A stretch of DNA of 64,000 bases from Rebecca billardiae RCC1528 (taxonomy: Eukaryota > Protista > Haptophyta). The notes beneath the pieces are model-generated. The model searched no databases. It was not told the DNA's origin and was given only the letters and a program-made list of their open reading frames with translations. A program made the translations under genes and the position numbers. This document shows positions 942 to 37,923 of the stretch, one piece after another; position 1 is the first letter of the stretch, and each line of letters starts with the position of its first letter. The stretch spans positions 1,984,001 to 2,048,000 of the forward strand of contig OZ251235.1 of NCBI GenBank assembly GCA_965240325.2, read 5' to 3'.

Positions 942-2348
942 TCACCAGGCTCTCGGCCCGGAGTACACGGGCAGCGGGTGCGGCGCGCCGGGCGGCCGCT
1001 TGAGGATGTCGAAGAAGACCGGCACGACCCCGTCGCGCAGGACCGCCAGCGCGTCGCGCTCGGCGTCCGGCGGCGCCGCGGCCTCCGCGGCGCACAGCTC
1101 GGCGAGCACGCGGCACTCGTGAATCTGGTGCGCGCGGTACGGGTGCAGGGGTGGCACCATCTCGTCGTCGTCCGCGCCGGCGGGGGCGCGCGCCGCGGCG
1201 GCCTCGGCGGCGGAGCTCATCGCGTGCGCGAGGTCGAAGAGCACGAGCGCGCGCGCGTGCTCGCGCGGCACGCTGTGCGTGCCCAGCTGCCCGTAGAAGC
1301 GCACCATCCCCACCTCGGCCAGCGCGTCGGGCAGCCGGCGCTCGGCGCCCAGCTCGAACAGCTCGAGCGCGCTCTCATAATGTCCCTTCTCGCGCGCGTG
1401 CACGCCCATGTTGAAGCAGGCCGTGCCCGTGCGGTCGATGGGCGCGGCGAGGCGCGCGGCGCGCCGCTCGAGCTCGCGCGCGCCCACGTGCCCGGCGGGG
1501 CGGCGCTGCGCGTACTCGACGGCGGTCTGGATGCACTCGAGCGCGTGCCCTTCGAGCACGCGCGCCATGCGCTCGCCTGAGTCGCCGCGCGGGGCGGCGA
1601 GGCCCTGGGAGATGAGCTGCGCGTTCCGGATCGGGTACGCGCCGACGGCGACGCCCGCGAGGTCGAGGTACACGCGCGCGCAGCGCAGCAGCGCGCTGCC
1701 CGCGCCGAGCAGCGCGCCGGTTTTCTCCAGCCGCCGCGCCGCCCTCTTGAGCTCTTCGAGCTCGCTCTTGTCGAGCTCGCGGTTGCTGCCAAAAAGCGTC
1801 ACCGCGGCGTTCACCCGGTCGACGAGGGAGATGGCGCGGCAGTTCGGGAGGCGCTTGCCGAGGAAGATCAGCGGGTCGTGCCCGCCGTTCAGGTCGGTGA
1901 AGAAGAAGTCGTCGGGCACGCCGAGGCTGAGCGCGTACGCCTCGCGCTTGCGCTCGGCCGGCGCCTCGAACGCCTCGGGCCGGACCAGCTCCTCGATCGG
2001 CGGCGGCAGCTCGGCCATGAGCGCGGCGAGGGCGCCGTACGCGTCGACGTCCAGCGGATTGGCATCGTGCGCGCGGCGCGCGTCGGCGATGCGGCGGCGC
2101 AGCTCGCTCAGCTCGGCGCGAGGCGTGGGCTCGAGATTGGTCGGCTTCACTTTGAGCCCGCCCGCCTCGCCGTCAAAGTGCACGGCCCAGCGCTGCGCCT
2201 GCTCGTCAAACTGCTTGAGCGTGCATACGCGCCCGTTCAGATCCGCGCGGCTCACGAGGCTGTGGATGATCGCCTCGCGCCCGGGCTGGAGGGAGGGGGT
2301 GAGGTCGGCCGGCTCGACGTCCATCGCGGCGGGCTGGGCCTGGGCCAT
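942..2348 (-). CDS. Hypothetical protein with N-terminal SH3/KOW-like module and Sel1/TPR-like repeats
   Basis: 468-aa ORF with normal composition. N-terminal GREAIIHSLVSRADLNGRVC...RWAVHFD...LKVKPTNLE module, then Sel1-like ACFNMG...ALELFELGAERRLPDALAEVGMVRFYG. Confidence 0.65.
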   Translation of the reverse strand: MAQAQPAAMDVEPADLTPSLQPGREAIIHSLVSRADLNGRVCTLKQFDEQAQRWAVHFDGEAGGLKVKPTNLEPTPRAELSELRRRIADARRAHDANPLDVDAYGALAALMAELPPPIEELVRPEAFEAPAERKREAYALSLGVPDDFFFTDLNGGHDPLIFLGKRLPNCRAISLVDRVNAAVTLFGSNRELDKSELEELKRAARRLEKTGALLGAGSALLRCARVYLDLAGVAVGAYPIRNAQLISQGLAAPRGDSGERMARVLEGHALECIQTAVEYAQRRPAGHVGARELERRAARLAAPIDRTGTACFNMGVHAREKGHYESALELFELGAERRLPDALAEVGMVRFYGQLGTHSVPREHARALVLFDLAHAMSSAAEAAAARAPAGADDDEMVPPLHPYRAHQIHECRVLAELCAAEAAAPPDAERDALAVLRDGVVPVFFDILKRPPGAPHPLPVYSGPRAW

Positions 2349-2540
2349 CTTGGGCCGTGGCGTGTTGTCGATATTATGTCGCGGCTCAAAAGTCCGGCGG
2401 CCGCCATCCGGCTTATTTCAACTTCCGGTGAGCCGTTGGAGGCGAGAGGCGGCAAGAGCTGCCACTGCCACCGCCATCGCCCCGCTGCACTGCGCGAAGG
2501 GCGGCGCGAGGGGCTGGGCAGCTGCTCGCGCGCCGCCGCC

Positions 2541-6565: not shown

Positions 6566-8008
6566 ATGGAGGTCGCGCGGCTCGTGCGCACCTTCATGGT
6601 GGTCGGCCTCGTCGGCACCATCATCCACCTCACGAGCGCATTCGTGAGCCCGATCGTGCCCCTCTTCATCATCGGGCTGCTGTACTTTCTGATGCAGATC
6701 CCCGGCGGGCCGGGCCCAGAGCGCACGCCGCCGTTCTTTGACGAGCAGCCATTAGGAAGCGGGCTGAGCTATGGCGTGGCGGCGGTGCAGGGCGGCCGCC
6801 CGTACATGGAGGACATGCACCAGGTTGTCAGCTTCAACGGCGGCGCGAACGGCGTGGGGAGCGGAGCCGTGGGCGCCGTGAGTGGCAATAGCAACAACAT
6901 GGCGCTGCATTCTGCGGTCGCGGACTCTGTCGGCCTGATGAACTTTTTCGCGGTGTACGACGGGCACGGCGGCAAGCTCGCCGCGCAGTACGTGCACAAG
7001 CACCTTGTCTCGCGCATCGTGCACTCCCTCGAGCAGAACGTCGGCGCCGCCGACGCGGCGCCCGCCGACGAGGGCTCTCAGGAGCTCGTGTTGCACAAAG
7101 CCATCCGAGAGGGGTTTCTACAGGCGGACGAGGCGTTCATACGGGTGCGCGGCGGCGCGCCCGCGCGCGGCGGCGGCGCGTACTGCGCGCGCGCGCGCGC
7201 CCTCGCGCGCCCTCGCCGCGCGCCACCTCGCTCAGCCTGCGCGCCCGCCCGCGCGCGCGCGCGCGCGCGCTCCGCGCGCCGCCGCGCAGGGCGCTGCCAA
7301 GCTCGGCCTCTCAGACGGCTCGACCGCCATCGCGGCGCTGCTGCAGCGCAACGGCGTGCTCACCGTGGCCAACGTGGGCGACTCGCGATGCGCGCTCGTG
7401 CGCAAGGACGGCAGCTGCGTGGCGCTGAGCAGCGACCACAAACCAAACCGCCCAGACGAGAAGGCGCGCGTGTGCGCAGCGGGCGGTTGGGTCGTGCACC
7501 AGGGCTGCTGGCGTGTAGCCGGGGACCTGGCGGTGTCGCGCGCGTTCGGGGATCGGCATCTGAAGCGGTACGGCGTGTGCGCCGACCCGGAGATCACGCG
7601 CTTTGTGGTCGCGCCGACCGACGCGTACCTCGTCCTCGCGTCGGATGGGCTGTGGTGCGCGGCCGCGCCGCGCGCGCGCCCCTGCGCCAGCCAGCCTGCG
7701 CCCGCGGCGGGGCGCCGTGCCGAGCGCGCGCTGACTCGCGCGCTCGGCACACGCGCCGCGCACGCGCGGTGGTGGCGCGATCGATGGCGCGCAGGGACGT
7801 GGTGAAGGAGCCGGCGTGCGGGCAGGTGCTGAGCAAGTGCTCGTCCTCGCTCGAGGGCGCAAAGGCCCTGTGCAACCTCGCACTGCGGCGGGGCTCGGGG
7901 GACAACATCTCTGTCCTCATCATCGACCTGCAGCGCTTCGCGCCCTCGAGTCGCGCTCCGAGAGAAGCGGCGGCCGCGGCGAGAAGCGTATCGTCGCACG
8001 AGGACTGA
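6566..8008 (+). CDS. PP2C/PPM protein phosphatase with two N-terminal TM helices. Inferred introns 7145-7289 and 7655-7794
   Basis: Motifs QGGRPYMED, FFAVYDGHGG, GSTA, ANVGDSR, DHKP, LAVSRAFGD, LASDGLW|D and GSGDN are joined in frame once both introns are removed. Confidence 0.93.
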   Translation: MEVARLVRTFMVVGLVGTIIHLTSAFVSPIVPLFIIGLLYFLMQIPGGPGPERTPPFFDEQPLGSGLSYGVAAVQGGRPYMEDMHQVVSFNGGANGVGSGAVGAVSGNSNNMALHSAVADSVGLMNFFAVYDGHGGKLAAQYVHKHLVSRIVHSLEQNVGAADAAPADEGSQELVLHKAIREGFLQADEAFIRVRGGAPARGGGAYCARARALARPRRAPPRSACAPARARARARSARRRAGRCQARPLRRLDRHRGAAAAQRRAHRGQRGRLAMRARAQGRQLRGAEQRPQTKPPRREGARVRSGRLGRAPGLLACSRGPGGVARVRGSASEAVRRVRRPGDHALCGRADRRVPRPRVGWAVVRGRAARAPLRQPACARGGAPCRARADSRARHTRRARAVVARSMARRDVVKEPACGQVLSKCSSSLEGAKALCNLALRRGSGDNISVLIIDLQRFAPSSRAPREAAAAARSVSSHED

Positions 8009-8459
8009 GCTGTCCGCCAGGGCCGGCTGCGGAGCCCTCGCGCTGACAATATCACAACACCGACTACGGGCCGCACTGATCTAAGCTGAGCTTCGGGCAC
8101 AATCATGGCGGTCACGGGTCTGACGCGGGAGCGGACTCGAAGAGTCCGATCGTCCGATCGCAAGGTCCGCTATTACCGGGTCCGGCGCGGGCGGCTGGGA
8201 CAGTGCGGGTCCGCCGTCGGCCGTGACGGCTGTGAGCCGGCCGCGGTGCCCCGCCGGCGGGACTGTGATCGACTAATTATCTGTCGTCTGTCTGAATGAC
8301 TGATACGGCTAGCAGTCGATACTCTACGATTGAATAAGTTGAACTCGATTCGCCGACACAGTTAGTTACTGAGGCTCATTCGGTCCACTGCTTTATAAAG
8401 TGCTGAGTGTGCTGACTGCTGCCGTCAGCTGCTTATTCACGGATCAGTGAACACTAAGC

Positions 8460-8464
<5 letters not shown>

Positions 8465-8529
<65 letters not shown>
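8465..8529. repeat. (TA)n microsatellite
   Basis: About 32 perfect TA units. Confidence 0.97.
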
Positions 8530-8532
<3 letters not shown>

Positions 8533-9259
8533 ATACAGTTTGACGGCTGCGGGCGCCGAACGACGGTTGTTGCATATACATATATATGAATGAGAGGCGT
8601 CATTACCTGCTATACCACTGCTAGCTAGAGTTACTGTCGTCAGGCTCAGGCTGGGCACTGGGCAGGGCACACAGCTGACCCGCCGTCCGGAGCTCTGATC
8701 AGTCCATCATATTCATGTACATGATGATCAGTCAGTGCGTCTCGACTCTCGTATTCTTTCTTCGAGCGCTGCCTGCTGAGTGTCGACGATCGGGCACTGC
8801 CGCCGACGAATCAGGAGACCCGCGTCGTCCTACCTGTGTCGTTAAATCATAGAATGAGTAAACTGTAGCTACTGACGATCACTGAATGAAGCCTGCTGTC
8901 ATAGGCTGTAGCTACCTTTCAGACCGTCGTACTCGTAGCACGCACACTCTGTCCGCAGGATGCTGGGTAATCCGACGAGGAGTAAAGCCCAGCCCGAGCG
9001 GAGGCCGGACGGGGAGGGAGCGGTAATTCCACGGCATCGATTTTCATAGAACGCGCGGCATCGTGGACATGCATCTTGCCCGCGACGATCGACACCGGCA
9101 CTGCGGCAGTGGCCTCCGCCGGCTGCAAAGGCAAGGCGGCCACCATCGCGATTCGCGAATTGGCCCCTGCTTGACGCTGCCTGACGGCTGACAAGTGGAC
9201 CGAGCCTGCCGCCGAGCTGGCCAGGCGCTCGCTGCGCGCTTGAAGGGGGTGGCGCGAGC

Positions 9260-10471
9260 ATGGCGGCCTCGTGCCTGGCGCTCCTGGCCGTCGTCACCGT
9301 GGTTGCTCGAGTGAACAACGAGACCGCCTTCAAGCTGGCGCAGGCGCACGCGGTGGCCGACCACATGTTCATGCGACTGGAGAACATCTCGCTGTCCGTG
9401 GGGAACGTGGACAACTGCTCGCGTGGAGTGGACGTGCCGACGTACTGGATCAACCTGGACACATCGATTGATCGACGAAAGTTCTTCCTGAAGTCCCTGA
9501 GACGCAGTGGCATCACGACTCCCATGGAGCGCGTTCCAGCTGTGCGCGGCGGGCGCTACTGGCGCAACCCAGTCAAGTCCTCAGGGTTTGCGTGGAGGTC
9601 GAAGGGCGAGCTGGGCTGCGCGCTCTCCCACCTCAAGGTTGCTCGAAGGCTCCTCGACGACGGCCACGATGCCGCCCTCGTCCTCGAGGACGACGCTGAC
9701 CTCACGTTCTGGCGGCTGTGGCCGTACTCCTTGCGACAGATCATCAACAAACTTCCGCCAAACTGGACGACCTTGAGCCTGCAGCACTGGCTCAACGAGT
9801 CCACGTTCAGGGAGTCGACCAATCGGCTAGTACTGGAGAGCGGTGCGTCTGCCCCCGTCAACAAGTCCGCGTTCATCGTGAACACGGAGTACACTGAGGA
9901 GGTCTGGGGGACTACTGCATACCTCATGTCTCGGCGGTGGGCAGCACGGCTCTGCTCATACACACTCGGCTGCACCGCCTTGCATCGCAATCGCATCCCG
10001 ATCGACACGCATAAGACCGGCGCAGATCACCTGCTCTACCGCATGAACGGGCACGTCACCTTCGTTCTTTGGCCCCAGTACATCGTGGTCTCTTCTCCAA
10101 CGCGGAAGTCGTTCTCGACCATAACTAAGCAACTCCATCGCGCCGCGCGCGACAGACAAAAGATCTTGCAGCTGGCGCTCGACAACAGTGCCCACCTGAT
10201 CAGGCTTCTGCAGGACAATGCTGGCGCAGGGACCGCGGCGGCCGTGCCACCCCTGATGGTCTTTTCAGGCGGGAACACCTGTTTCAAGCCTCACGCCGCC
10301 GCCCTCTCGAACAGCACGCCCGCGCCAATGCGATTTCTGCTGCTCATTCGCCAGCTGCGTTACCCGCGCTGCTCGAACCACAACTGCACGCGAGAGAAGA
10401 ATTGGCGCGTATTTCGATCCTCAGCGCGCACGTGCCACGCACCGCAGCGTCCACCTTCAGGCTGGTATTGA
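9260..10471 (+). CDS. Glycosyltransferase family 25 (LgtB/Lex1-like), intronless, with N-terminal signal or anchor
   Basis: YWINLDTSIDRR, ERVPAVRG, GELGCALSH, LVLEDDA, GTTAYLMS, ADHLL. Confidence 0.87.
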   Translation: MAASCLALLAVVTVVARVNNETAFKLAQAHAVADHMFMRLENISLSVGNVDNCSRGVDVPTYWINLDTSIDRRKFFLKSLRRSGITTPMERVPAVRGGRYWRNPVKSSGFAWRSKGELGCALSHLKVARRLLDDGHDAALVLEDDADLTFWRLWPYSLRQIINKLPPNWTTLSLQHWLNESTFRESTNRLVLESGASAPVNKSAFIVNTEYTEEVWGTTAYLMSRRWAARLCSYTLGCTALHRNRIPIDTHKTGADHLLYRMNGHVTFVLWPQYIVVSSPTRKSFSTITKQLHRAARDRQKILQLALDNSAHLIRLLQDNAGAGTAAAVPPLMVFSGGNTCFKPHAAALSNSTPAPMRFLLLIRQLRYPRCSNHNCTREKNWRVFRSSARTCHAPQRPPSGWY

Positions 10472-11543
10472 CGATCCGGATATATCGGCTCCGGGGCGGG
10501 ACTGCCTGGCGCGGCGCCATGTCTGAATGACTCGTCGTCATATATAGAATAAGCCGCCACTGATGAAGCAGCGCCGCGCGCATTAGCGATGCATGTATAG
10601 TAGCAGGTTTTTATATTATGATGTAGGCCATTACTCAATAGGCGCGCCACTGATGGCGGCTGAATTTTACGCCGAGTCAGACTCAACCGGGAGCCGACTT
10701 ACGGATCGATCGCGCGAGTGGCAGCATTACCGCTTATATACCTAGCGGCGGAAATCAAATCCGCCAAATAATGATCATCAGTCAGGATCGACTAGGACGA
10801 GGAGTCGCCCGCGAGTCAGGCGACTCACAAAGGTGCATGCACGCATATATAGTAATAATGTTTATGATTATCACCAGCTCAACTATGTGGCTCAATCGAC
10901 TTTCATCCGGCCAGCGTTAGTACTTATTGAGTTGTAGTTAAATTTGCGCTGTTGCGATCTCTGACGCCAGATGATCTGTCGAGTATATTGATATGTGAAG
11001 TGCGGTGATGCGTCTCAATCAACAGCAGTCCATTCTGCCCCAGTGTCTGCGTCAAAGTCTGAGCCGCCAGACTCCCGGCGAAGGAGGACTTCTGCTTAAC
11101 AGTCCGCACATCGTGGCGCCGAAGGAGTCACTCACGCCCACTATTACACGGGCGGGCCACACGCATCCAATAAAGCGCTTACACGCCGCGCGCTGAGATA
11201 ACAGTCATGCGCGCAATAATAGTATCATCGCGCATGAAACTTGCACTGGCAACGGTAGCTACCGATGGCGAAACCTCGATCTGCGGTGCCGAAGCTTCGA
11301 GCCTCCACCGCGAGGCGTAGAAGCTGGTGCGTCGCCGGGGATCGCGCTATAGGTATATGGACATGGTGCGCATGCTCAGTCACTCAAGGACACCCTCCTC
11401 CGTCCCTCTGCACCGCGGCCCTCGCCCCTCGCGCGGCTCGGCCTCGGGCGTGGTCCACCAGGTTGCGGCCTGCACAATACACGCGATCTGACGCGCGCCC
11501 GGCAAACGCCTGCGCATGCCCCTTCCATCGTCAGCTATCCGGA

Positions 11544-12028
11544 GGCTCCGGCTCCGGTCCCACCCCCCCAGCTCCGTTACGTCTTCGCCCCAAGCCGAAG
11601 TCAACCAAGCGGACCATGCAGCAGAGTCCCTTCACTCCCTTGACCCTTCCGACCCCCGATCATTGACGATGACTTCAACGAGAAATGTCGCATCCGACCA
11701 CCTCCCAATAGGTTCAGACTCTATTTTTACTATATAATTACCCGTCCCTTGCTCAGATTTCAGCACAGTCCGGGAGCGTTCCGGGCACCTGTATACATAT
11801 ATGCGAAAATGATACCCGGGTACTGGGTATTTAGTTATAGAAAATAGAGTCTGAACCTATTGGAGGTGTGGCTGATGATCCATCTGGCCGTAATATCGTC
11901 CAAGTGACCGCCTGGGGTGGGCTAGGAGCTATTGTAGATCATCAGAGGCGGAGATCCCGCCGATTGCAGTGTCAATATGTAACGCTCCACCATGACCGGA
12001 CTGGGGGGGGTGGACCGAAGCCGGAGCC
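11544..12028. repeat. Nested inverted repeats (decayed foldback or MITE)
   Basis: 11699-11734 is a near-perfect reverse complement of 11836-11868 (CACCTCC(C)AATAGGTTCAGACTCTATTTT). 11544-11576 is a reverse-complement match to 11997-12028. Confidence 0.75.
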
Positions 12029-13818
12029 GGGACGGAAATGCTTTGTGGATGGGTTGTGTGATTAGCGGACTACCGTGCATCAGGAGGTTGCGACGGACCT
12101 GTCTCATGTCTGTTCGAGGCGGTCCGTTTATAAGAGTCTGAATATACAGTATATATTATATTAATATTTGGTCTGCCGTGAATTAAATTCAGTTTATGTA
12201 AGAGTGCACTAGCCACTACTATAATACAGACAGGCTGGGGGCTGCTTCTGGCTGCATGCGGTGCAGCCACATCAGTCCACATTTGAGCTGCCCCATGCAC
12301 CACAACGGCCTCTGTGCGGATGTGACACGTCACGCTCGCGGTCTCATGACGACACGCTGCCGACTGGCTTGGCCACCGCTGCCGGCCGTCCGCAGAGGAC
12401 ATCTGAGACTGAGTCGAGCTACAGGCAGAGAAGGGGTTGCCACCGCATTGGCACACTCACAGGTCGCGACGAGGCCACTGGCATCGAGATACGGCACGCG
12501 CATGGGCTAGCATTCGCTCGCATGCGGTGTGCTAAAGTGAAGCCCCCCGGTATGCGGCAGTTCTTCATTCAGCAAACACGGGTGCACGCGCGGGCGCGAG
12601 CAAGGCGCGCTGACGGATGCTGAATGGTGAATGCTGTGAGTTTGCCTCATGGCGCGCGCAGATCGTACACGAGCCTCGCCCCGGGCGCGCGCCCGCCCCG
12701 CGCCGACCGCACCGTGCACCGCGCGCGCGCTCCCGGTTGGCGCGTGGCCACGGTTGGCTCTTGGTGCGGCGCGCGGGCGCGGGCTGGCCTGAGGCACGGC
12801 GAGGGCGCCGGCGAGCGCGGCGCGCGGCGAGGGAGGGTACTACGTGCTGTCTAGCATGCGACCAACCACGCGCGCCGTGTCCGCGGCCGCTGCCGCGGGC
12901 GCAGGAGCACGCGGCGTGCGCACCCCACGCGCCCCGGCGGCCCGCCAGGAGAATTAGCCGCTGCGCCGCGAGGGCGCACGAGCTGATCGGTAACCAACCT
13001 CCGCCCGCTCGCGGCACTGGAAGTACGCAGCCATTTCCGCCCTTGCCGGGCCTGTCACTCAGCCCCGTACGATCCAGCCCAGACCAGTCGCGCACGTCCC
13101 GCACGCGTCGTCTCGTGTGGCACGGCAGTCGAGTCAAGCGGCGTGCCGTCAGTCTGTGCGCCGCTGCCCGTGGCCAGGAGGCGGTGCGCACGCGGCCGCA
13201 CGCGGCGTCGATGGTGATGACAAGGCCGGGCCCCGCGACGGGCGTCGCGCTCGAGCAGTGCCAATCTAGCTGCGCGCGTTCGGAGACAGAGGCGCACAGC
13301 TCGGCAAGCCATGCGGCACAGGTCGATCGCGTACGCCGCAGCGGCGAAGGCAGGCGCGCAGTGGTGATGTGACGGCGAATTTGGGCGCTGCGTGTATCAG
13401 CGCCGGTGCCCAGCCAGTCGTAACGGGCCCGAGCGCGATCGTGCAGGGGCGAGTGCCGCCACGCGCGTCCACGGAGCAGAAGACCGCCATCCGCCGCCAA
13501 AAGCGCGAGATCGCTCAGATCGGCGATCGGTACCGAACCGCGCCAGTCCGGTGCAAACGCGGTTGATCTTGGATCGTCGGCTTTTATAAGAGGTACAAAA
13601 GCGGACGTGCGTCCCCCGGCTGAAATTCTATATGCTGATTTGAAGAGCGGTAGATGAATAATTACTCGCGCCCGACCAAGCTTGGGGCTTATTACAAAAT
13701 ACCACTTCGTAAGCCCCTTGGCCCGACATCATCACAAATTTGCGCGCCAAGTCCGCCGTATCATCAATCCCCGGTTGACCCTGAAACAATATGTGGCCGA
13801 TGAAATCGAACCGCCGAA

Positions 13819-16800
13819 ATGCCTGAAAATATATGGCCCAATGAATGGCCGCTACCCACAGATCGCTGCGTTTCGTACCCGCTCGTTTGGGACGACGACG
13901 GGGGGCCGCTCGGCGCTCGCTCGCCAACACCCTGTGTCCCCCGCGAGGTGAGGTCTGACGACTGGGCTGGGCGGCGTAGGCAGGCGATGCTGAAGCCTCC
14001 CCACGCTGACGCGGGTGGGGACGAGGCCCCGCCAAGCCCACTCGTCCGCAGCACGATCGATGCCGCCCAGTTCGCCCTCGACACGGGCGAGGACGACGGC
14101 GTCCCACTGAGCGACTTTCGCGAGCTCCGCGTGCTTGGCCGCGGTGCGAGCGGCGAGGCCTTCTTGCTGCAGCACGCGCGCCAGCCGGCGTTGCATGTCG
14201 TGGCGAAGCGGATCACGATCGGCGACATGAACGAGAGGGAGCGCTCGGCCGCGAGCACCGAGGTGCGCATCTTGGCATCGCTGAACCATCCGACGATCAT
14301 CAAGTATTACGGCAGCGTGATCAACCGCAAGGCCAAAGTGCTCGACATCGTGATGGAGTATGCCGACGGCGGCTCGCTCGCCGAGCGGATCCAGGCGCAG
14401 GCGGCGGCCGACACGCCCTTCGACGCGGACCTGCTCTTTTCGTGGCTCGCGCAGATGCTGTGGGGGCTCGAGCACCTGCACGAGCGCGCCATCATCCACC
14501 GCGACCTCAAGCCGGGCAACGTCTTCCTCACGCAGGGCGGGATGCTCGTGCGGCTCGGCGACTTTGGGATCTCGCGGCACATGTCCAACGCCGCGCAGCT
14601 CGCCGAGACCATGTGTGGCACGCCGTACTACCTCTCGCCCGAGATGGTGCGTGCGACCCTGCGACCCTGCGACCGCGCGCGTGTCCGTGACTGGGACTGG
14701 CTGGGTGTGCATGCGGCATGCGGCATGCGCGCGTGCCAGTGCCGGGTGCGCTGTGCGCGCGAGCACGGCCGCGCGCCGCCACGCGGGTCCCGCTGAGGCC
14801 CTCCCTCTCGCCCTCCCGCCCGCAGGTGATGGGCAAGAAGTACTCCACGCCCGCAGACATCTGGTCGCTCGGGTGCATCTTGTTTGAGCTGCTCTTCCTC
14901 AGGCGGCCGTTCGCGGGCAAGAACCTCGGGCACCTCGTGTACGAGATCGTGCGCACGGAGGTACAGCCGCCGACGCAGCTGCTGGGCGCGCACGCAGAGC
15001 TGTGCGAGCTGATGAGCACGATGCTCGTCAAGGACCCGGCGCGGCGCGCGACCGCGGCTGAGCTGCTCGCGATGCCCGCGCTCACGTGCCGCATCGACAC
15101 GATCTCGAGATCGCTGCTCTCGCTCGAGCAGCGCTCGCAGGAGCAGCACGACGCGCTGCTCCGGCTACGCGGCCGCGTGGACCAGCAGCTCTCGGCGTAC
15201 GACCGCGCGGGGCTCTCGCCCGAGCACTCGCTCGTCGTGTACCGTGCGGCGCGGCGCATCCAGGCGCAGTGGCGGCAATACAGCAGCGTACGGCGCGCGG
15301 AGGCGCAGCTGTTCGGCGAGGAGGAGGACGGCGCGCGCAAGCCGGCGCGGGACATGGGCCTCTCGGCGCCGGCGCTGCACCGGCTTCCGCCCATCTTGGA
15401 CGACGAGGACGAGGCCCCGCTCAGCGCCGCGCGCAAAGTCGCATCCAGCCCGGCCGCGCCGACGCGCCGGCAGCTGGCAGACATGGGGCCTGACACGCCG
15501 CGCTCCGCGGCGTCGTCGCCGCGCAAGGCGGCGTCTGGCCCGGCGCGGCTCGCGCGGCTCGCGCGCGCACCTACCGCGGAGCAGCAGCTCGCGCAGCTCG
15601 ACGCCGTCGAGCCGTTCGACGCGGGCGAGAGCGCGCGCGCGCCCGACGCGTGGGCCGAAGCGGAGGCGATGGATGAAGCTTTCCTGCTACTGCCCTCGCC
15701 GAGCCCGAGCTCCAAGTCGGACGGCGGGCGCGCGACGAGCGCGGACGGCGAGGGCGGTGAGCAGGCCGAGGCGCCGCGGCAGCCGTCCCCGACGCTTCCG
15801 CCGCACAGCCTCGAGGCGGGCGCTGCCGCGCGCGGCGCGGGGGTGCACACGAGGGTGGGAGCTGAGACACAGGCACTCTCACGGGCGGCGAGCGGCGGCG
15901 CCCCGGCGGCGGCGCGCGCGCAGCCGCCGCCGCTGCGGCAGGGCGGTAGCGCTGGCGGGGTGGCGGCGCTGCCCAGCGGCTCGGCCGCCCCGGCCCGCGC
16001 CGAGCCCGCGCGCGCCCCGCCCGGGCTCGGCCCGGCGCGCTCGTGGGGCGAGGACACGTGGCAGGCCGAGTCCTCTACCGGCGCGGGCGGCGGCAGCGGC
16101 GGCAGCGGCGGTGCGGGCGGCAGCGGCGGTGCGGGCGGCAGCGGCGCGGGCGCCCCTCGCTTCGCCAAGCCGAGGAAGCCGATGTTCACCCCGCCGCTCG
16201 GCACGCGCTGGCACCTGCCCAGGAGCGACGCGCCGCGGCCCTCCAAGTCCAGCACCACGCCGGACGCGCCCCGCCGGTTTGCGTTCGGTGCGCCGCTGCG
16301 CCGCGCGCGCCCGGAGCCTGCCAGGCCTCGCTACGCCTTCGACGGGCCGGATGTGCAGGCCGTGGTGACGCAGCTGGCGCGCGTGGACCTCGCCGCGACG
16401 CGCGCGGCGGAGCAGGCGGACCTGGGCTCGCTCAGCCGCGAGTCGCCCAGGCGGACGTCCGACGCCGACCAGTGGACCGTGGCTGAGGCCATGGGCGGCG
16501 TGGCGTTCGGCGGCGGTGGCGGCGCGCCGCAGCCTGCGGAGGCGCGGACCGCGGCGTTCGGCGGCGGCGGCGCGGCGGGCAAGCCGCGCCTCACGCGCTC
16601 GGCGACGACGGGCGTGCAGGGCAGCGCCCAGCAGCGCGCGTCGGGCGCCAAGCCGCGCGGCTCGCGCCAGCTCGGCCGTGCCCGTCGCTCGCAGCAGCCG
16701 TGGGCGGCCGCGGCCACAGGAGGAGGCCGCTGGTCGCACGGCGCGGAGCGCGGCGGCGCGCGGGCGTCGGAGCGTGACTCGCACGTGACGATTCTGACGG

Positions 16801-19204
16801 TCGAGTCGCGCGCGCAGAGCGACGGGCGGGCGGAGAGCGACGGGCGCGTGGTGCGCCTGCTGGGCGAGCGCGCCGAGTCGCGCGTCACCGCCGACGGCCT
16901 GCTGGGCGCGCCCGACCTCCACGGAATCTCGTACCAAATTGCATGCTCGTACCGGCCGGTGCGCGGCGCGAAGGGCTTCCGCTGGTCGGTCGAGCGCACG
17001 GCGCACGACTTTGCAAGGCTGCACGCCGAGCTCGGCGAGTACCGCGCGCAGCTCGCGGTGGCGGCGGCGTGGGCGGGCCACGGCGGCGGCGGCGCGGCGC
17101 GCGAGGAGCGCCCTCCAGGCGATGACGCCTCCTCCTCCGCGCGCGCCGCCGCGGGCGCCGCGCCCCGATCGATCCTGATGACTCCGCTCCAGCTGACCGG
17201 CGTCACGGCCACCGAGCTCGAGATGCAGTTGAGCGTCTTCCTGCGCGCGCTGCTCGGCCAGCGCGCGGCGTGGGACGCGCCGCCGCTGCGAACTTTCCTG
17301 GAAGTCTCCGCGCTCTCGTTCGGGCCCGACGGCTGGGACAAGGGGCGGGAGGGGCGGCTGCGGCTGCTTGAGACTCAGCCGCACCGCGCGCCGGGCGCGG
17401 CGCGCGGCGGCGGGCTCGGCGGGCTTGCGCGCGCGCTGCTCGCGTGCGCGCCGCTGCCGCCGCCGCCGCTGCGCCGCGACGGCAGCGGCACCGCCGCCGA
17501 CGGCGCTGAGCTCTCGACCCGCGTCACCCGCCCGCGCGCGGCGGACGGCGCGGGCGGAGGTTTGGGCGGCGCGAGCGGCGGCGCCGCGTGGTTCGTTCTC
17601 AAGTCGAATCTTCTCTGCCAGCTCGCGCACGCGGGCGCAGAGACGGCTGAGGACGTCTGGCTGCTCGACCGCTCCTTCGAGATGCGCGCCGCTCTCGAGG
17701 CGAGCGGGGGCGGCGGCGGCGGCGTTCGCGCGGGGTACGCGCCACGGGCCGGCGGCGAGGCTGGCGCCGCGGGCGCGGGCGGCGGCGGTGGTGACGGCGG
17801 CGGTGGCGCGGCCGCGCGGCGCGAGGGCAGCTGGCTCTTCAGCTCGCGCCGCGCGGCGCCGCACGCCGCGCGCGTGCTCACCCTGCACTCGATCGGCCGG
17901 AGCCTCTCCGTCCTCCCGCCGTCCGAGGCCGACCTGGCCGACTGGCTCCAAGCAGTCCGGCTCGCGCACTCGCGCTCAGAATGGACCAAGCCGCACGCGC
18001 ACGGCTCGTACGCGCCGACGCGCTCGCGCTGCGCGGCCGCGTGGCACGCTGGCCGGCGCGTCTGGCTGCGCGCGCTGACCCGGCTACTCGCCAGCGCGCG
18101 GCTCGAGATTTGCATCTCGGCGCGCACCGTCGCGCTGGGGCTGCGCCTCGCGGCCGAGGCCGCGCCGGCAGAGTTGCTTGAGTCGCGCGACGGCGCGGAG
18201 GAGCTCACGCTGGGCGCGCTGCTGCGCGCCAAGGCGGAGGCGGGCGTGGCGGTGCGCGTGCTGCTGTGCCCCACGACCTCCGACCTCGAGCCAGCGCCCA
18301 AGCCGAGCGGCGGCGCCGCAGCGCGCGGCTCGCGCGGCAGCGCTGGCAGCACGCCGACGCTCGGCTCGCGCCGTGGCTCCGCGGCTGCGCTCCCGGCGGG
18401 CGGCGGGCGGCGCGGCCGGTGGCCCGGCGCGGGCGGCGCGGAGGGCGCCGAGCACGCCGCGGGCGCGCCGCTCCTGCAGCAGCTGCAGCAGCAGCGCCGC
18501 TCGTCGAGCGGCCAGCTGCTCGGCGCGCTCGGCTCGAGCGCGCGCGCGAGCGCGCTCGCGCTGCAGCAGCTGCACCCGAACGTCACCGTCCTGCTCGCGC
18601 CGCCGGCGGCGAGCGGCGGCGGCGGCGGGGGCGAGGGCGTGCCGCCCGCGCGCCGCGGCGCCGCCGGCCTCGCCAACTCGTCGCTCGAGGCGCCGCTGCG
18701 GAGTGCGGGCGCGGTGCATGGTGCGCGGCTCGTGGTGGTGGACCAGCAGATGGCTCTCATCTCCTCCGCCGAGATCGCAATCTCGGCGGCCGAGGTCGCA
18801 ATCTCGGGATCGACGGGCGAGATGGATGAGCCGAGTGTAGGGGAGGGCACGCCACAGGCTGCCGAGCGCGCGGCGGGCGGGCGGGCGGGCCGCGAGGCCG
18901 CTCGGCCCACCCCGCCCTCGCCACCGCCGCCCGCGCCGCCAGCCTCGCCGCCTGCGCCGCCGCCGCCGACGTCGTCGCACCCTCAGGCGCCGGGCGCGGA
19001 CGACGGGGCGCCGGCGGCAGCGGACGCGCCAGCGTCGGCGGGGGCCGCGCCCGAGATCGGCCGCCGGCTGCTGCGCCCTGCGCTCCGCACGGCAGGCGAG
19101 GTGTCCTCGGCGCCGATGGCTGCGATCAAGCGGCCGCGTGGCGTGTCCTTTGTTCCAGACGACGAGCCGCAGCCGCAGCCGCCGCAGCCGCAGCAGCCGC
19201 AGCA

Positions 19205-19235
<31 letters not shown>

Positions 19236-21413
19236 CAGCCGCCGCCGCCGCCGCAGCAGCAGGAGCAGCCGCCGCAGCAACCGCAACCGCAGCCGCAGCC
19301 GCAGCCGCAGCCGCAGCAGCCAACGGGTGTGCGCGCGGGCGCCAAAGCCGGTACGGCTGGCGCGGCGGGCGGCGGCGCGGACGGCGCCGGCACCATGACG
19401 GTCATGGATCTCGAGCTCTCGGCCTCTGACCTCGGCCGGACCGGCGGCTTCGCCTTCGGCGCCGAGCAGGCGGCGAGGCGGCGGGAGGGCCCTGAGGAGA
19501 GCGCGACTGCCGGTGGCGCCGGAGCGGCGGGAGGCAGCGCGCCCGCGAGCGCCGACCTGCGTGCGCAGCAGCGCGCGGCGAGCGCGGCCGGCGCGCCCGC
19601 GCCAGTGCCGCAGCCGCCGCCGCCGCCGCCGCCGCAGCAGGGGCGTACGCCGCAGCCGGCCGCGCACGGCGGCGCGCGCGGCGCGGACGCGCGCGCGGCG
19701 CCGGCCGCGCCGCCGGCCGCCTACTTCTCGCTGAGCCACGACCTCGCGATCGAGCTCTTCGCCGCGCCCGCGCGCGACCTGGCCCGCCATTTCGCGGAGG
19801 AGTGGAACCACTGCCGGCGCACCGAGCCCAGGCTGATTACCCACGTGGGTAATCAGCACGCGGGCGCGAGCGCCGAGCGTCGGCCGAGCGCGCAGCGCGC
19901 GGCGGTGGCGGCGGCGGCGGTCGCGGCGGCAACGGCCGCGGGCGGCAGCGGGCGGCGGGGCCCGCGCCGGCCGAGCGCGTCGCGGCTGTATGCGCCCGTG
20001 CCGCCCATCCTGCCCGCGCCGGATTACCCACGTGGGTACACGCCGTACCAGCTGCAGGGCGAGCTCTCGTGCCAGGCCGTCCGCTCGGCGGCGGCGTGGT
20101 CCGTCGGCTGCTCGCACGAGGCCTCGCTGCACGACGCGCTCGTCTCGCTGATCGCCGCGGCGCAGCGGTTCGTGTACGTCGAGAGCTCGCTGGTGGAGGC
20201 GGATGAGGCTGAGCCGGCGGACGCGCCGGCACCGCCCGAGCGCGCGGCCGCGCTGCAGGGCTCCGCGCGCGCCGTCGCGCGGATGGCCTCGGTGCACGCC
20301 GCCGCCGGCGGCGGCGGCGGCGGCGGCGCGTTCGGCGGCACGACCAGGCACCGCGTCACGCAGGCGCTGGTCGATCGGATCTGCCTCGCGCACGCGCTCG
20401 GCGCGCCGTTCCGCGCGATCCTGCTGCTGCCGCTGCCCTCTGATGCCTCGTCGGCGCACTCGGCCGATGGCTCGCTCGCGTGCCTTCAGGACGCGTACAC
20501 GCAGCTGCGCGCGCGCGGGGTCACGACGCCCTCCGAGTATCTCTCCCTCTCCTCTCTGCAGGCGTGCGCGCCGGAGGAGGGCGGGCCGTGCGCGGCGCCG
20601 GTGCGCGTGCTCTCGCGCGTCGCCATCGCCGACGACCGAGTCGTCGTCGCGGGCACTGCCGACATTACTGACAGGTGCGCGCCGCACGCGAGCACGCGCG
20701 CAGCCCGCGCCCGCCTCGCGGCCGCGCCGCGCAAGCCGCGCTCACCGCAGCCCGCGCCCAGCTCGGCGCCCACGACCCGCACCGCGCGCGCGCGCTGCAG
20801 CGACCTGGCGGGCGACTACAACTCGGAGGTTGGCGTGCGCATCGAGGGCGCATCCTTTGCGCGCTCGCTGCGCTGCTACCTCTGGTGCGCCCACCTGGGT
20901 ATTCGGCTAGGCACCCACCTGGGTATTCGGCTGGGCACGGCTGTCGGCGAGTGCAGCGGCGGCGGCGAGGCGAGCACGGTCGGCGCCGTGCGCCCGAGCG
21001 CGCTCGACCTCGGCACAGCCTTCATGCCGAGCTCGCTCGACTTTGAGCCCGAGCTTGGTAGCCTGCCGCAGCCGCGCGGCGTGAGCGAGGCCGAGTGGAG
21101 CGCGCTGCTGCATGCGCCGCACTCCGAGCCCGCGATCAAGCTGTGGAGCACCGTCGCCGCGCACAACTCGGCCGCGTTCGCGCGCGCGTTCGGGCCGGCG
21201 TGCGCGAGCGGCCGCCGCCATCGGCCCGCCACCACCGCGGAGCAGGTCGAAGCGGTGTTCGGCGAGGCCGCCCGCACCGGCTGCCAGGCGCTCGTCGAGT
21301 TCCCACTCGCGCGCGTGCCGGCGGCCGCGCCGCCGGCACCCGACTCCGCGGCCGCGCGGCAGGCGAGGAGGAGCGCGGCGCGGCTCGCGGTCGCTGCAGT
21401 GATGAGCCGGTGA
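13819..21413 (+). CDS. NEK/NIMA-type kinase fused to IQ motif, PX, PH and a degenerate phospholipase D. Inferred introns 14647-14825 and 20675-20800
   Basis: Kinase motifs GRGASG, VAK, HRDLKPGN, DFG, GTPYYLSPE|...DIWSLGC. IQ motif AARRIQAQWR. PX end FLEVSALSF. PH WFVLKS...WLQAV. PLD landmarks HGSYAP, AQRFVYVES, FRAILLLP, FARSLRCYLWCAHLG, LVEFPL. Confidence 0.8.
19165..19322 (+). repeat. Coding poly-Gln/Pro (CAG/CCG) tract inside the PLD insert
   Basis: Encodes PQPQPPQPQQPQQ...QPQQP. Confidence 0.85.
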
Positions 21414-21923
21414 CACCGTGACCGACGCACCGGCCTCAGTCACCGACCCGACCGCGCTGGCTCCGTGACCGTCGTCCGCCGCTCATCACGCTTCATTCCT
21501 GGCAAAGGCGCTCCGGCTCCCGCTCAAGCCGACGCTCACGCTGCCGCACTCGCAGCAGGCGACATTGCCATCGCATGTATCGTCAGCGGCAGCATCATCA
21601 TCGTCATCATATATATTGCTGCGCTATGAATATATCGTGGCGCATCATCATTTGTACTACTATATATGCGCTTAATTTGATGTAGCAGTGCATTATTATC
21701 ATTTGTCGGAGGAGCAGCCGGCAGCGGCGGAGGAGGAGCCGGCAGCAGGTCGGAGGAGGAGCCGGCAGCGGCGCGGCGCGATGCCGGTGACTCGAGTCCG
21801 CGAACGGAGCGCGGCACTCGCGGCGGTGCGGCTGGGGCCGTGGACAGAGTGGGTGCGCTGAGCGCGGCGCACAGCGAGCGTGGGACTGAGCATGCGGATT
21901 CGGCGTGCGGGGCGGGCGCGCCG

Positions 21924-24597: not shown

Positions 24598-25225
24598 GGT
24601 TGCGCGTCCAAGACCCGGTACTCGTCGCGGGCACAGCCACCCGCTCGGTCCCCGCCTTCCGCGTCCACTCACAGCACACCGCGTTGGGAAGCCGGGCGAG
24701 ACGATCGCTCACTGCTCAGTGTGTCGCCGGCCGGACTGGGTATCTGCCCTAGGACTTTTCAAACACCCGGAATTCGAGAACGATCGCCAGCTGGTTGGAA
24801 GATGATTATCTCGGCGTCAGCCTTTTCTATTTCGGCCGTGTGTATTCCGCCAATAGGCAGCTCTCCTTTTGCGCCTACACGCCGGGCGCCCAGCACTCAT
24901 GGTTGGCACTCGCGGTGAGTTCTACCATAAGTTCTTCTTTACCCCTCTGAGAGTCAGTCCGGAGCGGCGTCCGGGGGAAAGGGATAAATCGTCGGTTTCG
25001 GCAAACAGCGTGGCGATCCCGCGAGCAAACAGGCGCGCGGCTGTGCGCAGGCGCGTCGTTCGGACCGGTCGCCAGTATCGGCGGCTTTCCGCGTGCGCTC
25101 TTCGCGGGCTTGCCCACGAGCGCAGCTTGGAAGCTGTGGGGCCCACCCGCCAACGCCAGAAAGCCCCACCCCCACCCTCTCGAAGGGCTGGCGGGAAAAG
25201 GCCCACGGGCGCGCGACGGGATCGC

Positions 25226-27904
25226 ATGGAGACGTGCGCCTCGCCGACCAAATGCAGCGGGGCGGGGGGCGTGAGTGACGTGCACGATGCTGGCGTCACC
25301 CCCGCCTCGCCCAAGTCTGGCGCGGCGGCGGGCTCAGCCGGCGGGCACGGGCTGAGCGGCGGCGCGCACGACTCTGCCGCGCCGCGCGGGCGCTGCGCGG
25401 GCGCGGTGGCCGGCGCCGGCGCCGCGAGCGAGGGGGAGGCAGCGGGGCGGGGCCCAGACACCGCCATCCTCCCAGCGAGCGCGTCCGCCGCGCCCGAGCC
25501 GTCTGCCGCCGGCGCCGCGGCCGCGTGCTCGGCGGGCGCGTCGCGAGCGGGCGGCGGCCGGCACCGTCCCGCCTCGGCAGAGCCGCCGCTCGTCGCGGGG
25601 GCGGCGACGGGCGGGCTGGCGCGCGAGGAGAGCGGCGAGCGGGACGAGTCGGACGACTGCTCCGAGCTCGCCCCCGGCGCGCCGCTCCCCTTCGACGTCG
25701 TCAAGCTGCGCTGCCACGGCATCCGCGAGGGGTCGTACCAGTGGGAGCTGAAAACAGCGCCGAGCACGGCCGGCTGCGCGGACGTGGAGTCGTCGAGCGG
25801 CCCGCGGCGCGCGCCGAGCGCGCCGAGCGGGCCGTGCGTCCGCTCGGCCGCGTGGTACGCCGCCACCGCCGCCGCCACCGAGCTCATCGCCTCGTACAGC
25901 CACGAGCACGTGCGGCTGACGATGGCCTACACTGACGAGCAGCGCACGGAGGCGCTCAAATTGTTTCGAGATTTGAACCACCTGAGCCTGCGCGGCGGGA
26001 TCTCGTGCGAGCGCGTGGTGACGCACGCGGCGTCGCACACCGTGCTGCTCCAGTTCAAGGAGCACCTGCACGCCTGCGCCGCCACCTTCGACCTCTCCGA
26101 GCACTGCGTGATGCTGCGGCTGCTCGCCACGCACCCGCGCATGACACGCCACGGCTTCGGCAAGGTGGTGGTCCACTTCCTGAAGGAGCTGGGGCGCGCG
26201 CTGGGCAAGGTGGCGATCATCGCGTACACGTACCCCAACGCCGCCCTCTTCTACGAGGTGCGCGCACCTGCCGCGCACCCCGCCCTCGCGCGCGCGCGCC
26301 GCCGCACGCCGCGCCGCGCCGCGCCGCGCCGCGCCGCGCCGCGCCGCGCCGCGCCGCGCGTGGTGCGCTCTCGCTCCGACGCGTGTGCGCGCGTGTGCGT
26401 GCGTCGGGCGCCGCGCCGCGCCCGCGGCGTGCCGCAGGCCATGGACTTCCGCGCGACGGGGCAGATGGAGAACGAGATGGCCTTCAACATCCAGCGCTCG
26501 ATGGACGACGTGCTCGACTCGCTGCGCGATCTCTCCGAGTCTCACCCTTACGCGTGCACGCGCCGGTCGCGCGAGGCGGCGGGCGGCAGCACCAAGCTGG
26601 GAGCGTACACGGAGGCGGTGGCGCAGCCGCAGCTCTCCGTCGACGGCGCGCCGCCGACCCGCTCCGACGCCTCGTGCGCCAAGACCGAGGCGAACATCGC
26701 CAAGATCTGGGACCACAGGCCAGCGGTGGACGGCCGCGGCTCGGAGTATCTCGTGCAGTGGCATGCGCATTCGATCGAGGGTTCGGTGTGGGAGCCCGAG
26801 TCGGAGCTGAAGCGATGCCGGCGCGCGCTGCAGGCGTTCGAGAGCGCGCACGCGCGGATGGTGCAGGGCATGCCGCCGTCGTGCCGCCCGCCGCCGCTCT
26901 TCGGCGCGGTGTCGGCGGGCGGCGGCGCGCACGCCGCAGCCGCGGAGCGTACACCGTCGGCGCTGTCAATGCCGCCGGCGGGCGCGGACGGCGCCGCCGC
27001 CGCCGCGCCCTCGCCGCCCGCAGGCGCGGACGCGGAGGGCGCGCGCGAGGGCGGTGGCGGCGCGCGAGCGCCGCCGCTCGGCGGCGGGCGAGCGAGCCGC
27101 TCCCGGGGGGCGCTCTCGCCCGCGCCGAAAGACGGCGGGGAGCCGGCAAGCGAGGCTGCGCCGCTCCCAGGCACGCCGCCGAGTGACGGTGGGAGCGGCT
27201 CTGTGGGCGGCGCGGGGCGGCGCAAGCGCGCAAAGCGTACCGACCCGTGCTTCCTCGCGGCACCGGGCGACGCGCCGACCGCGCCGCAGGTGCTCGGCCC
27301 GCGCAGGCGACACTCGCGCGAGGACGGCGGCGGGGCGGGCCCGCCGACGCCGCCCGCGCGCCCGCCGCCGCTCGCGCCGACGTCGGCTGAACAAGCGGCG
27401 GGTCTGCTGGCCGCGGCGGGTCTGCTGGCCGCGGCGGGTCCGGGCCCGGCAGCCACGCCGGCGGCGGACGGGCCTGCGCCGCGCGCCTCGCCCGCGGTGA
27501 GCCCTGCGCGTCGTGGCCGCGCGCAGCCGGCGGCGGGCCAGCACGCGCTCGCGGCTGCCGACGAGCTGGCCGCAGCGACGCGGGTGCGCGCCGCGTCGCG
27601 CTGTGTGCCATCGGCCGCGCGCGTGCTCAGGCGCCCGCCCGTCCGCGCGCCGCGCTCACCCACCCCCCCCCCCCGCGCCTCGCGTCCGCTGCGGTCCGAC
27701 GCCCACCGCTTGGCGCAGGAGCAGGGCTCGCCGTGCGACTCTGGCAGCAACGAGCCGTCAACACCGCCGCATCCGTCGACCGACCTGCCGACGCCGACCG
27801 TCGGCAAGCGCCTGAGTGCCGGCGGCGCAGACGACATCCGCCCGAGCAAGGCGGCGCGACCGAGCCCCGCGGACACCGCCGCGGAGGCTGCCCGCCGCGC
27901 CTGA
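25226..27904 (+). CDS. GCN5/PCAF-like GNAT acetyltransferase with chromodomain. Inferred introns 26258-26437 and 27584-27718
   Basis: GNAT motif A LLATHPRMTRHGFGK and motif B YTYPNAALFYE|AMDF. Chromodomain IAKIWDHR...EYLVQWHAHSIEGSVWEPESEL. Confidence 0.75.
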   Translation: METCASPTKCSGAGGVSDVHDAGVTPASPKSGAAAGSAGGHGLSGGAHDSAAPRGRCAGAVAGAGAASEGEAAGRGPDTAILPASASAAPEPSAAGAAAACSAGASRAGGGRHRPASAEPPLVAGAATGGLAREESGERDESDDCSELAPGAPLPFDVVKLRCHGIREGSYQWELKTAPSTAGCADVESSSGPRRAPSAPSGPCVRSAAWYAATAAATELIASYSHEHVRLTMAYTDEQRTEALKLFRDLNHLSLRGGISCERVVTHAASHTVLLQFKEHLHACAATFDLSEHCVMLRLLATHPRMTRHGFGKVVVHFLKELGRALGKVAIIAYTYPNAALFYEVRAPAAHPALARARRRTPRRAAPRRAAPRRAAPRVVRSRSDACARVCVRRAPRRARGVPQAMDFRATGQMENEMAFNIQRSMDDVLDSLRDLSESHPYACTRRSREAAGGSTKLGAYTEAVAQPQLSVDGAPPTRSDASCAKTEANIAKIWDHRPAVDGRGSEYLVQWHAHSIEGSVWEPESELKRCRRALQAFESAHARMVQGMPPSCRPPPLFGAVSAGGGAHAAAAERTPSALSMPPAGADGAAAAAPSPPAGADAEGAREGGGGARAPPLGGGRASRSRGALSPAPKDGGEPASEAAPLPGTPPSDGGSGSVGGAGRRKRAKRTDPCFLAAPGDAPTAPQVLGPRRRHSREDGGGAGPPTPPARPPPLAPTSAEQAAGLLAAAGLLAAAGPGPAATPAADGPAPRASPAVSPARRGRAQPAAGQHALAAADELAAATRVRAASRCVPSAARVLRRPPVRAPRSPTPPPRASRPLRSDAHRLAQEQGSPCDSGSNEPSTPPHPSTDLPTPTVGKRLSAGGADDIRPSKAARPSPADTAAEAARRA

Positions 27905-37878: not shown

Positions 37879-37923
<45 letters not shown>

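Follow-up and report, generated by a model that had tools for sequence, protein, structure and literature searches.

Does one gene of the haptophyte Rebecca billardiae RCC1528 join a NEK-family protein kinase to a phospholipase D (PLD) that can no longer act as a lipase? The question was raised by a 64,000-nucleotide (nt) stretch of contig OZ251235.1 (positions 1,984,001 to 2,048,000 of the forward strand, assembly GCA_965240325.2; hereafter the window, to which all coordinates refer), in which an earlier reading made from the letters alone (the original prediction) described a NEK kinase fused to a PX-PH-PLD region with both HKD motifs destroyed. Here we report that the locus encodes a protein kinase domain, most likely of the NEK type, followed by a domain with a PLD1/2-like fold from which the catalytic residues have been lost, that the second altered HKD motif is conserved in a relative, and that the C-terminal PLD lobe is under purifying selection. 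We read the locus as a single gene combining a NEK kinase, PX and PH domains and a dead PLD that would target or scaffold the kinase without any catalysis of its own, and we give this reading as a whole a probability of about 0.6.

Kinase, PX, PH and PLD domains

The gene most likely consists of three exons (13819 or 13987 to 14646, 14826–20674 and 20801–21413) that encode a product of approximately 2,430 amino acids (aa). Its parts, with the predicted local distance difference test score (pLDDT) for modelled regions, are the following:

13819–14646 (+): exon A, a short N-terminal region and the kinase N-lobe through the activation loop; the kinase domain begins at about 14119
14647–14825 (+): intron 1, 179 nt, GT...AG, phase 0; falls between kinase subdomains VIII and IX
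14826–15083 (+): kinase C-lobe, the first part of exon B; Pfam Pkinase 2e-10, profile positions 171–261 of 263
15084–16868 (+): disordered linker of about 600 codons, low in complexity, rich in Ala, Gly, Pro, Ser and Arg, without a recognisable domain
16869–17321 (+): divergent PX domain, interrupted by an insert of low complexity
17346–17975 (+): PH domain, carrying two long disordered inserts
17976–18779 (+): PLD N-lobe, with pseudo-HKD1 at 18717–18743; model core at pLDDT 85–95
18780–19730 (+): insert between the PLD lobes, about 317 residues, disordered and rich in Pro, Gln and Ala; pLDDT <50 over model residues 271–587
19731–20674 (+): first part of the PLD C-lobe, with pseudo-HKD2 at 20610–20636
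20675–20800 (+): intron 2, 126 nt, GT...AG, phase 2; holds no stop and has a length divisible by three
20801–21413 (+): exon C, the rest of the PLD C-lobe and C-terminal helices (pLDDT 80–92); stop codon at 21411–21413

The kinase is divided between two open reading frames (ORFs): ORF 13819–14796 holds the N-lobe (Pfam Pkinase, 7e-40), and ORF 14718–21413 (2,231 codons) opens with the C-lobe (2e-10), where the original prediction had placed it. Comparison of exon A with Protein Data Bank (PDB) sequences returned NEK1 as the best match (8.8e-37) and NEK7 and NEK2 next (approximately 1e-30), well ahead of the first non-NEK family, RSK, at 3e-24 (a PKR–NEK7 chimera and one GCN2 entry without a qualifying stretch excepted); kinase matches of the C-lobe in the PDB also include NEK1. 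Splicing at the intron 1 borders (GAGATG/GTGCGT ... CCCGCAG/GTGATG, slashes marking the junctions) joins the lobes without a gap: NEK1 residue 196 is matched by the last residue of exon A, and residue 198 by the second of exon B. The catalytic motifs, predicted earlier to be intact, can all be read by eye: the Gly-loop GRGASG, VVAK with the VAIK-type Lys, HRDLKPGN, DFG and the P+1 loop GTPYYLSPE. Judged by these features, the kinase is most likely NEK-type and is predicted to be catalytically competent.

Past the kinase, the Pfam scan of the long ORF gave no domain above threshold (PX at E=0.11; no PH and no PLDc match), so the assignment of PX, PH and PLD rests on homologue alignments and predicted structure. 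The PX-PH segment is collinear with the Pfam-verified PX and PH domains of PX-PH-PLD proteins (P0022 and others) and carries signatures of that family, namely W.V.R...DF..LH, FLEVSALSF and a C-terminal PH helix running into H..S[FY]AP. An AlphaFold2 model of 16821–17990, built with 19 homologues, contained structured blocks at pLDDT 80–93. Its PH part best matched the PH domains of PEPP1, ArhGAP9 and GRP1 in the PDB, with template modelling (TM) scores by target of 0.5–0.6, and its PX part best matched the PX domains of SNX25, SNX15 and SGK3; the probability of these structural matches was approximately 1 but their E values were 0.01–0.1. The alignment and the models thus bear out both domains, each with a weak individual score.

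For the PLD, an exhaustive HMMER search with 17811–21410 against 1.84 billion representatives (E≤1e-3) returned 276 matches, usually as four collinear stretches, the best full-length match reaching 4e-20. A Pfam scan of seven of these matches detected PLDc or PLDc_2 in all seven, PX in five and PH in five. Among PDB sequences, human PLD2 aligned in four collinear stretches (7e-12), and PLD1 matched too. A model of 17970–21410, built with 48 homologues, had a confident core at pLDDT 85–97 and a two-lobed fold that matched the catalytic domains of human PLD2 and PLD1 (Foldseek E of approximately 1e-19, TM by target 0.64–0.70). Both PLD halves are therefore present, as had been proposed, and on alignment and modelling the PX-PH-PLD architecture is real and strongly diverged.

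Coding continuity between the kinase and the PLD

In the original prediction, 14718–21413 formed one uninterrupted frame. The ORF is indeed open throughout, but it is not one exon: it conceals intron 2. This segment corresponds to a 42-residue insertion missing from 48 of 48 aligned PLDs and has a codon-model score of 0.03. Further evidence came from the closest relative, a 217-aa fragment (P0002) on contig L001 (1,182 nt, 78% GC, run ERR14847148), and from a second allele or strain of that relative (contig L002, run ERR14847151). In L001 the homologous stretch (341–453) is 113 nt long, GT...AG, and changes the reading frame; in L002 (341–454) it is 114 nt long and contains an in-frame TGA. 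Once it is removed, both species show the canonical ...ITD-x-DL.GD...SE spacing. The restored spacing, the absence from other PLDs, the low codon score, the frame change in L001 and the TGA in L002 show that 20675–20800 is an intron hidden inside the ORF.

In the three examples of this intron (window, L001 and L002) the donor reads /GTGCG and the acceptor GCAG/. A GC content of approximately 80%, the absence of stops and a length divisible by three can all occur together in introns of this lineage; such introns vanish inside ORFs, so ORF-based gene calls in this genome will over-read them. L001 and L002, which come from two sister runs and a related GC-rich organism, are 98.8% identical, have nearly the same contig ends and were the sole close relatives found in approximately 15 billion proteins, so that public protein sets hardly cover the lineage.

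Whether the kinase and the PLD form one gene was judged from DNA statistics. The window is eukaryotic DNA of very high GC content, with third-position GC of at least 0.9 in coding regions and about 50–60% GC in non-coding DNA. Third-position GC in the kinase/PLD frame is 0.84–0.97 over 14826–21400, and 0.87–0.96 in the linker itself, whereas the non-coding flanks 13350–13950 and 21450–21750 have low GC (approximately 50–60%) and no periodicity. A codon-usage log-odds model trained on five other genes of the window scored above zero in one frame from 14826 to about 21300, except for short GC-rich dips. One dip, over 20680–20799, matches intron 2. The others lie at 15460–15580, 15760–15940 and 16660–16780, which are the three short dips of the linker, and at 18820–19000; these four are probably low-complexity coding sequence, and introns with donors other than GTG[CA]G are possible there. 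A scan for GTG[CA]G...[CT]AG intervals that are in frame and of low coding score returned just 20675–20800 and a candidate running beyond the stop codon, with no other stop-free candidate upstream of the last approximately 200 nt of the ORF.

At its 5′ end the gene has two candidate starts, ATG 13819 and ATG 13987; an in-frame stop lies at 13801, 11400–13900 is without coding signal, and the codon score is above zero from about 13960. ORFs within 12565–13500 were considered as extra upstream exons and rejected, as they show no codon periodicity in any frame. That stretch has a GC content of approximately 0.70–0.80 and long ORFs on both strands, and is probably non-coding (promoter, 5′ untranslated region or repeat).

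The linker contains no stop in 599 codons, whereas each of the other five frames contains 1–7; shuffled linker sequence is expected to hold approximately 6, and the probability of none is 0.0015–0.005. The first in-frame stop of the kinase C-lobe frame is at 21411. A Pfam scan of the linker gave nothing credible (DUF6426 alone, E=1.3). The IQ motif proposed at about 15245–15300, and with it the notion of a calmodulin-responsive kinase, did not hold up: the pattern is a loose match, RIQAQWRQYSSVRR, with the second basic residue out of register, and neither the 41-residue segment nor the whole linker matched IQ (PF00612) in Pfam at E up to 10. Given the frame-consistent third-position GC, the codon score, the stop-free linker and the absence of a stop before 21411, the locus is likely to be one coding unit of approximately 2,430 aa, as far as DNA-level signals can tell.

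The alternative that survives best is a pair of transcription units or isoforms, in which alternative polyadenylation or an out-of-frame splice to a stop would end a NEK mRNA within the linker, and the PX-PH-pseudoPLD part is transcribed from an internal promoter, the shared open frame being a by-product of GC content. Long ORFs do occur in other frames of this 75–80% GC region, for example one of 867 aa on the minus strand, one stop-free in-frame intron did hide within the ORF, and a kinase accompanies none of the 150 nearest PLDs. Against this stand the stop count of the linker (none against about 6 expected, and 1–7 in every other frame), a codon score and third-position periodicity that keep to one frame with no low-GC, aperiodic gap of the kind seen at 13350–13950 and 21450–21750, and a C-lobe frame that continues without a stop until 21411. 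We therefore consider two units unlikely. Separately, the antisense and off-frame ORFs of 500–870 aa over the PLD region, such as 18084–20687 (−), carry the periodicity of the sense frame in mirrored form and do not represent genes; they are open because stop codons are scarce at approximately 80% GC.

The altered active site and its retention

To define the state of the active site, we aligned the window with 48 canonical PLDs, which yielded 115 columns conserved at ≥90%. The window retains 66 of these and differs at 49 (43%), and the losses cluster on the catalytic motifs:

HKD1 (18717–18743): HHEK....D has become HGAR....D (HGARLVVVD); His to Gly, Glu to Ala, Lys to Arg, Asp kept
HKD1 downstream partner: GG.DL has become SS.EI
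RMPWHD has become AAP...SHD: Arg, Met and Trp lost; Pro, His and Asp kept
ENQFF has become ESSLV
HKD2 (20610–20636): H.K....DD has become L.R....DD (LSRVAIADD); His to Leu, Lys to Arg, Asp kept
HKD2 partner: GSAN.N has become GTAD.T

The structural motifs ARDLARHF.E.WN and Q..RS..WS.G are retained. For comparison, two HxKxxxxD matches were present in 107 of the 151 proteins retrieved. The coordinates and substitutions given for the two HKD motifs in the original prediction proved exact in this 49-sequence alignment, and the damage extends further than it had noted, to several other invariant positions. HKD catalysis requires one His from each motif; this His acts as the nucleophile, and its mutation abolishes activity (PMC6008594). 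Lipase activity is therefore very unlikely. By its residues, the protein appears to be a pseudo-enzyme derivative of the PX-PH-PLD family and not a catalytic member of it.

The second pseudo-motif can be followed in the relative. L001 shares 71% identity with the window across the HKD2 block and 60% across the C-terminus, and it retains VRVLSRIAIADD, the shared block reading VRVLSR[V/I]AIADD. Both splice sites, like the pseudo-HKD2 block, are conserved between the window and the relative. As the relative carries the same LSR pseudo-motif, the loss of the HKD2 His and Lys predates the split of the two organisms. The NG86 comparison of the window with L001 over 288 codons of the C-terminal lobe gave a non-synonymous rate (dN) of 0.28, a synonymous rate (dS) of 0.51 and a dN/dS of 0.56, with dS−dN at approximately 3.4 standard errors, the latter estimated by hand. 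The ratio is probably an overestimate, because strong third-position GC bias lowers dS. Between L001 and L002, the exons differ at five sites in 1,017 nt, four synonymous and one non-synonymous (Ala to Val), whereas the 113-nt intron carries eight substitutions and one indel, so that exon changes are approximately 14-fold rarer per site. The dead PLD module thus appears, from these substitution patterns, to be maintained by selection, under relaxed constraint, in at least two related organisms.

These data bear on a second alternative, raised as a test of the original prediction, that the PLD half is a decaying relic, a fused or adjacent lipase that has lost its function, drifts neutrally and has no present role. 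It would account for the change at 43% of invariant PLD columns, for the long disordered inserts, for a dN/dS that is high for a domain and for the failure of Pfam to recognise either PLDc or PH. However, the frame has stayed open over approximately 1,500 codons and is strongly biased in codon use, the model of the structural core is confident and resembles PLD2, the relative keeps the pseudo-motif block nearly unchanged together with the splice sites, dN is significantly lower than dS, and the allele comparison, with four synonymous exon changes to one non-synonymous and an approximately 14-fold deficit relative to the intron, indicates retention. Neutral decay is accordingly improbable.

A third alternative holds that the PLD is still an enzyme with a non-canonical site, formed by the first His of HGAR and the Arg residues and perhaps acting on another phosphodiester substrate. 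His1334 does stand immediately before the lost catalytic His, and both Asp residues, the Arg replacements and the fold are kept. HKD enzymes nevertheless need a His in each motif, and the HKD2 block (VRVLSRVAIADD) has none; GG.DL and ENQFF are altered; and an HKD enzyme whose nucleophilic His is mutated is inactive (PMC6008594). We consider this alternative improbable, slightly more so than neutral decay. The phosphate-binding Asn of GSxN is also changed, to Asp in the window and to Thr in the relative. The same residue counts against the suggestion that the parallel Lys-to-Arg changes preserve phosphate binding: the HKD2 Arg is conserved in the relative, but the Asn of the same pocket is altered and differs between the species. 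The least probable explanation is an assembly chimera of two unlinked loci joined in the linker, which is low in complexity, GC-rich and error-prone for assemblies, since a random join would keep the frame in one case of three and would not be expected to yield a continuous codon signal with 600 stop-free codons, and no compositional discontinuity is seen.

Known systems, neighbouring genes and a proposed role

The closest architectural counterparts are the PX-PH-PLD enzymes, human PLD1 and PLD2, plant PLD-zeta and yeast Spo14, which have the same order of PX, PH and two-lobed PLD. The locus differs from them in lacking the HKD His and Lys residues, in its altered GG.DL, GSxN and ENQFF motifs, in its long disordered inserts, and in the addition of an N-terminal NEK kinase and a 600-residue linker. 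Unusual domain fusions are common in protist genomes, and the scaffolding of kinases by pseudo-enzymes is a subject of current interest, with KSR and FAM83 as examples. FAM83 proteins (DUF1669/SACK1) are vertebrate-only, have a single pseudo-HKD and show little similarity to PLD1/2 outside the motif; their His is lost, FAM83F has Arg in place of Lys, and the binding of CK1 depends on the Asp that is kept (PMC6008594). The locus is FAM83-like in that the motif His is lost, Lys is replaced by Arg, both motif Asp residues are kept and the partner is a Ser/Thr kinase. FAM83 binds CK1 non-covalently, whereas here the PLD1/2-type domain is complete, with both lobes, and is covalently joined to a NEK. 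SACK1/DUF1669 (PF07894) gave no Pfam match in any segment, and we regard the resemblance as a functional analogy, not as family membership.

Two further systems share part of this organisation. A kinetoplastid-specific clade of trypanosomatid NEK kinases has a C-terminal PH domain (PMC1266030); these kinases likewise place a lipid-binding-type accessory domain after a NEK catalytic domain, but the PH stands alone, with neither PX nor PLD. PLD5, like other HKD-superfamily members without HKD motifs, is described as inactive, and it belongs to the PLD3/4 branch, described as transmembrane proteins (PMC6008594); PLD5 resembles the locus as an inactive member of the superfamily and differs from it in having no PX-PH and no kinase.

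The author of the original prediction knew of no description of such an architecture, and our searches agree with this. A NEK-like kinase was found in none of the 150 nearest PLD representatives, and no kinase-bearing PLD in the literature searched, although no InterPro-style architecture query was part of these searches. The 1,949-aa exon B retrieved only kinase fragments from the ESM Atlas (score 0.70), and a metagenome scan for which the window and the relative were aligned over the HKD2 block brought up no relatives. In word-indexed protein searches, the PX-PH-PLD and PX pieces were swamped by low-complexity words, and the kinase C-lobe, compared with long proteins, returned one weak unrelated kinase.

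Other genes of the window were identified as follows:

1878–5234 (+): 1,119-aa ORF; B9-C2 domain of the ciliary basal body/transition zone (Pfam 1.4e-19); clear periodicity from about 2400 to about 4800 only
9260–10468 (+): glycosyltransferase family 25 ORF (6.7e-14), inside a lower-GC stretch (8000–12000, 56–58% GC)
24869–27901 (+): 1,011-aa ORF, strongly periodic in its coding signal; chromo domain (3e-07)
35784–39653 (−): DNA polymerase alpha catalytic subunit, 1,289 aa (DNA_pol_B 1.6e-116, exonuclease domain, zinc finger)

The B9-C2 ORF shows that the organism builds cilia or flagella. The polymerase ORF is apparently intron-poor, with third-position GC of up to 0.99. The third-position bias of the glycosyltransferase ORF, approximately 0.8, is below that of its neighbours and could mean a different expression or origin.

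We propose that the fused protein has lost phosphatidic acid (PA) production and that its dead lipase part would serve for targeting or as a scaffold. The PX and PH domains may bring the kinase to phosphoinositide-bearing membranes, and the pseudo-PLD body could serve as a platform for binding or regulate NEK output from within the molecule; by analogy, the locus would be a covalent version of the role that the FAM83 pseudo-PLD plays for CK1. Several points weigh against our reading of one NEK-PX-PH-pseudoPLD gene with such a role. The one-gene claim rests on coding continuity at the DNA level, and internal promoters, alternative polyadenylation and kinase-only or PLD-only isoforms are possible. 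L001 and L002 stop short of the kinase–PLD junction, so the conservation seen concerns the PLD part, and within it the HKD2 block and the C-terminus, HKD1 lying outside their coverage. A dN/dS of 0.56 is moderately below 1, and the interspecies identity of the intron (approximately 80% in a global alignment of GC-rich sequence) is near that of the exons (82%). The change of Asn to Asp or Thr appears to speak against a preserved phosphate pocket. Finally, lipid binding by PX and PH, kinase activity and the scaffold role are wholly conjectural.

For gene annotation, the locus gives reason for caution where third-position GC exceeds 0.9: long open frames may hide in-frame introns, and codon-periodicity tests are preferable to ORF length in arguments about gene fusion. 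In the literature searched, FAM83, with one short pseudo-motif, is the sole PLD-derived kinase scaffold, whereas a full-length PX-PH-PLD is involved here; if our reading is true, the locus would offer a tractable case for identifying the ligands of a dead PLD fold. A natural Rosetta-stone hint would come with it, namely that a PLD-type module, or a PA/phosphoinositide membrane link, is connected to NEK signalling. More speculatively, and with low confidence, a GC-rich algal lineage may have turned a complete PLD1/2-type lipase into a non-catalytic regulatory body wired to a NEK, independently reinventing the vertebrate FAM83–CK1 principle in covalent form and linking the phosphoinositide or PA identity of membranes to flagellar or mitotic NEK signalling.

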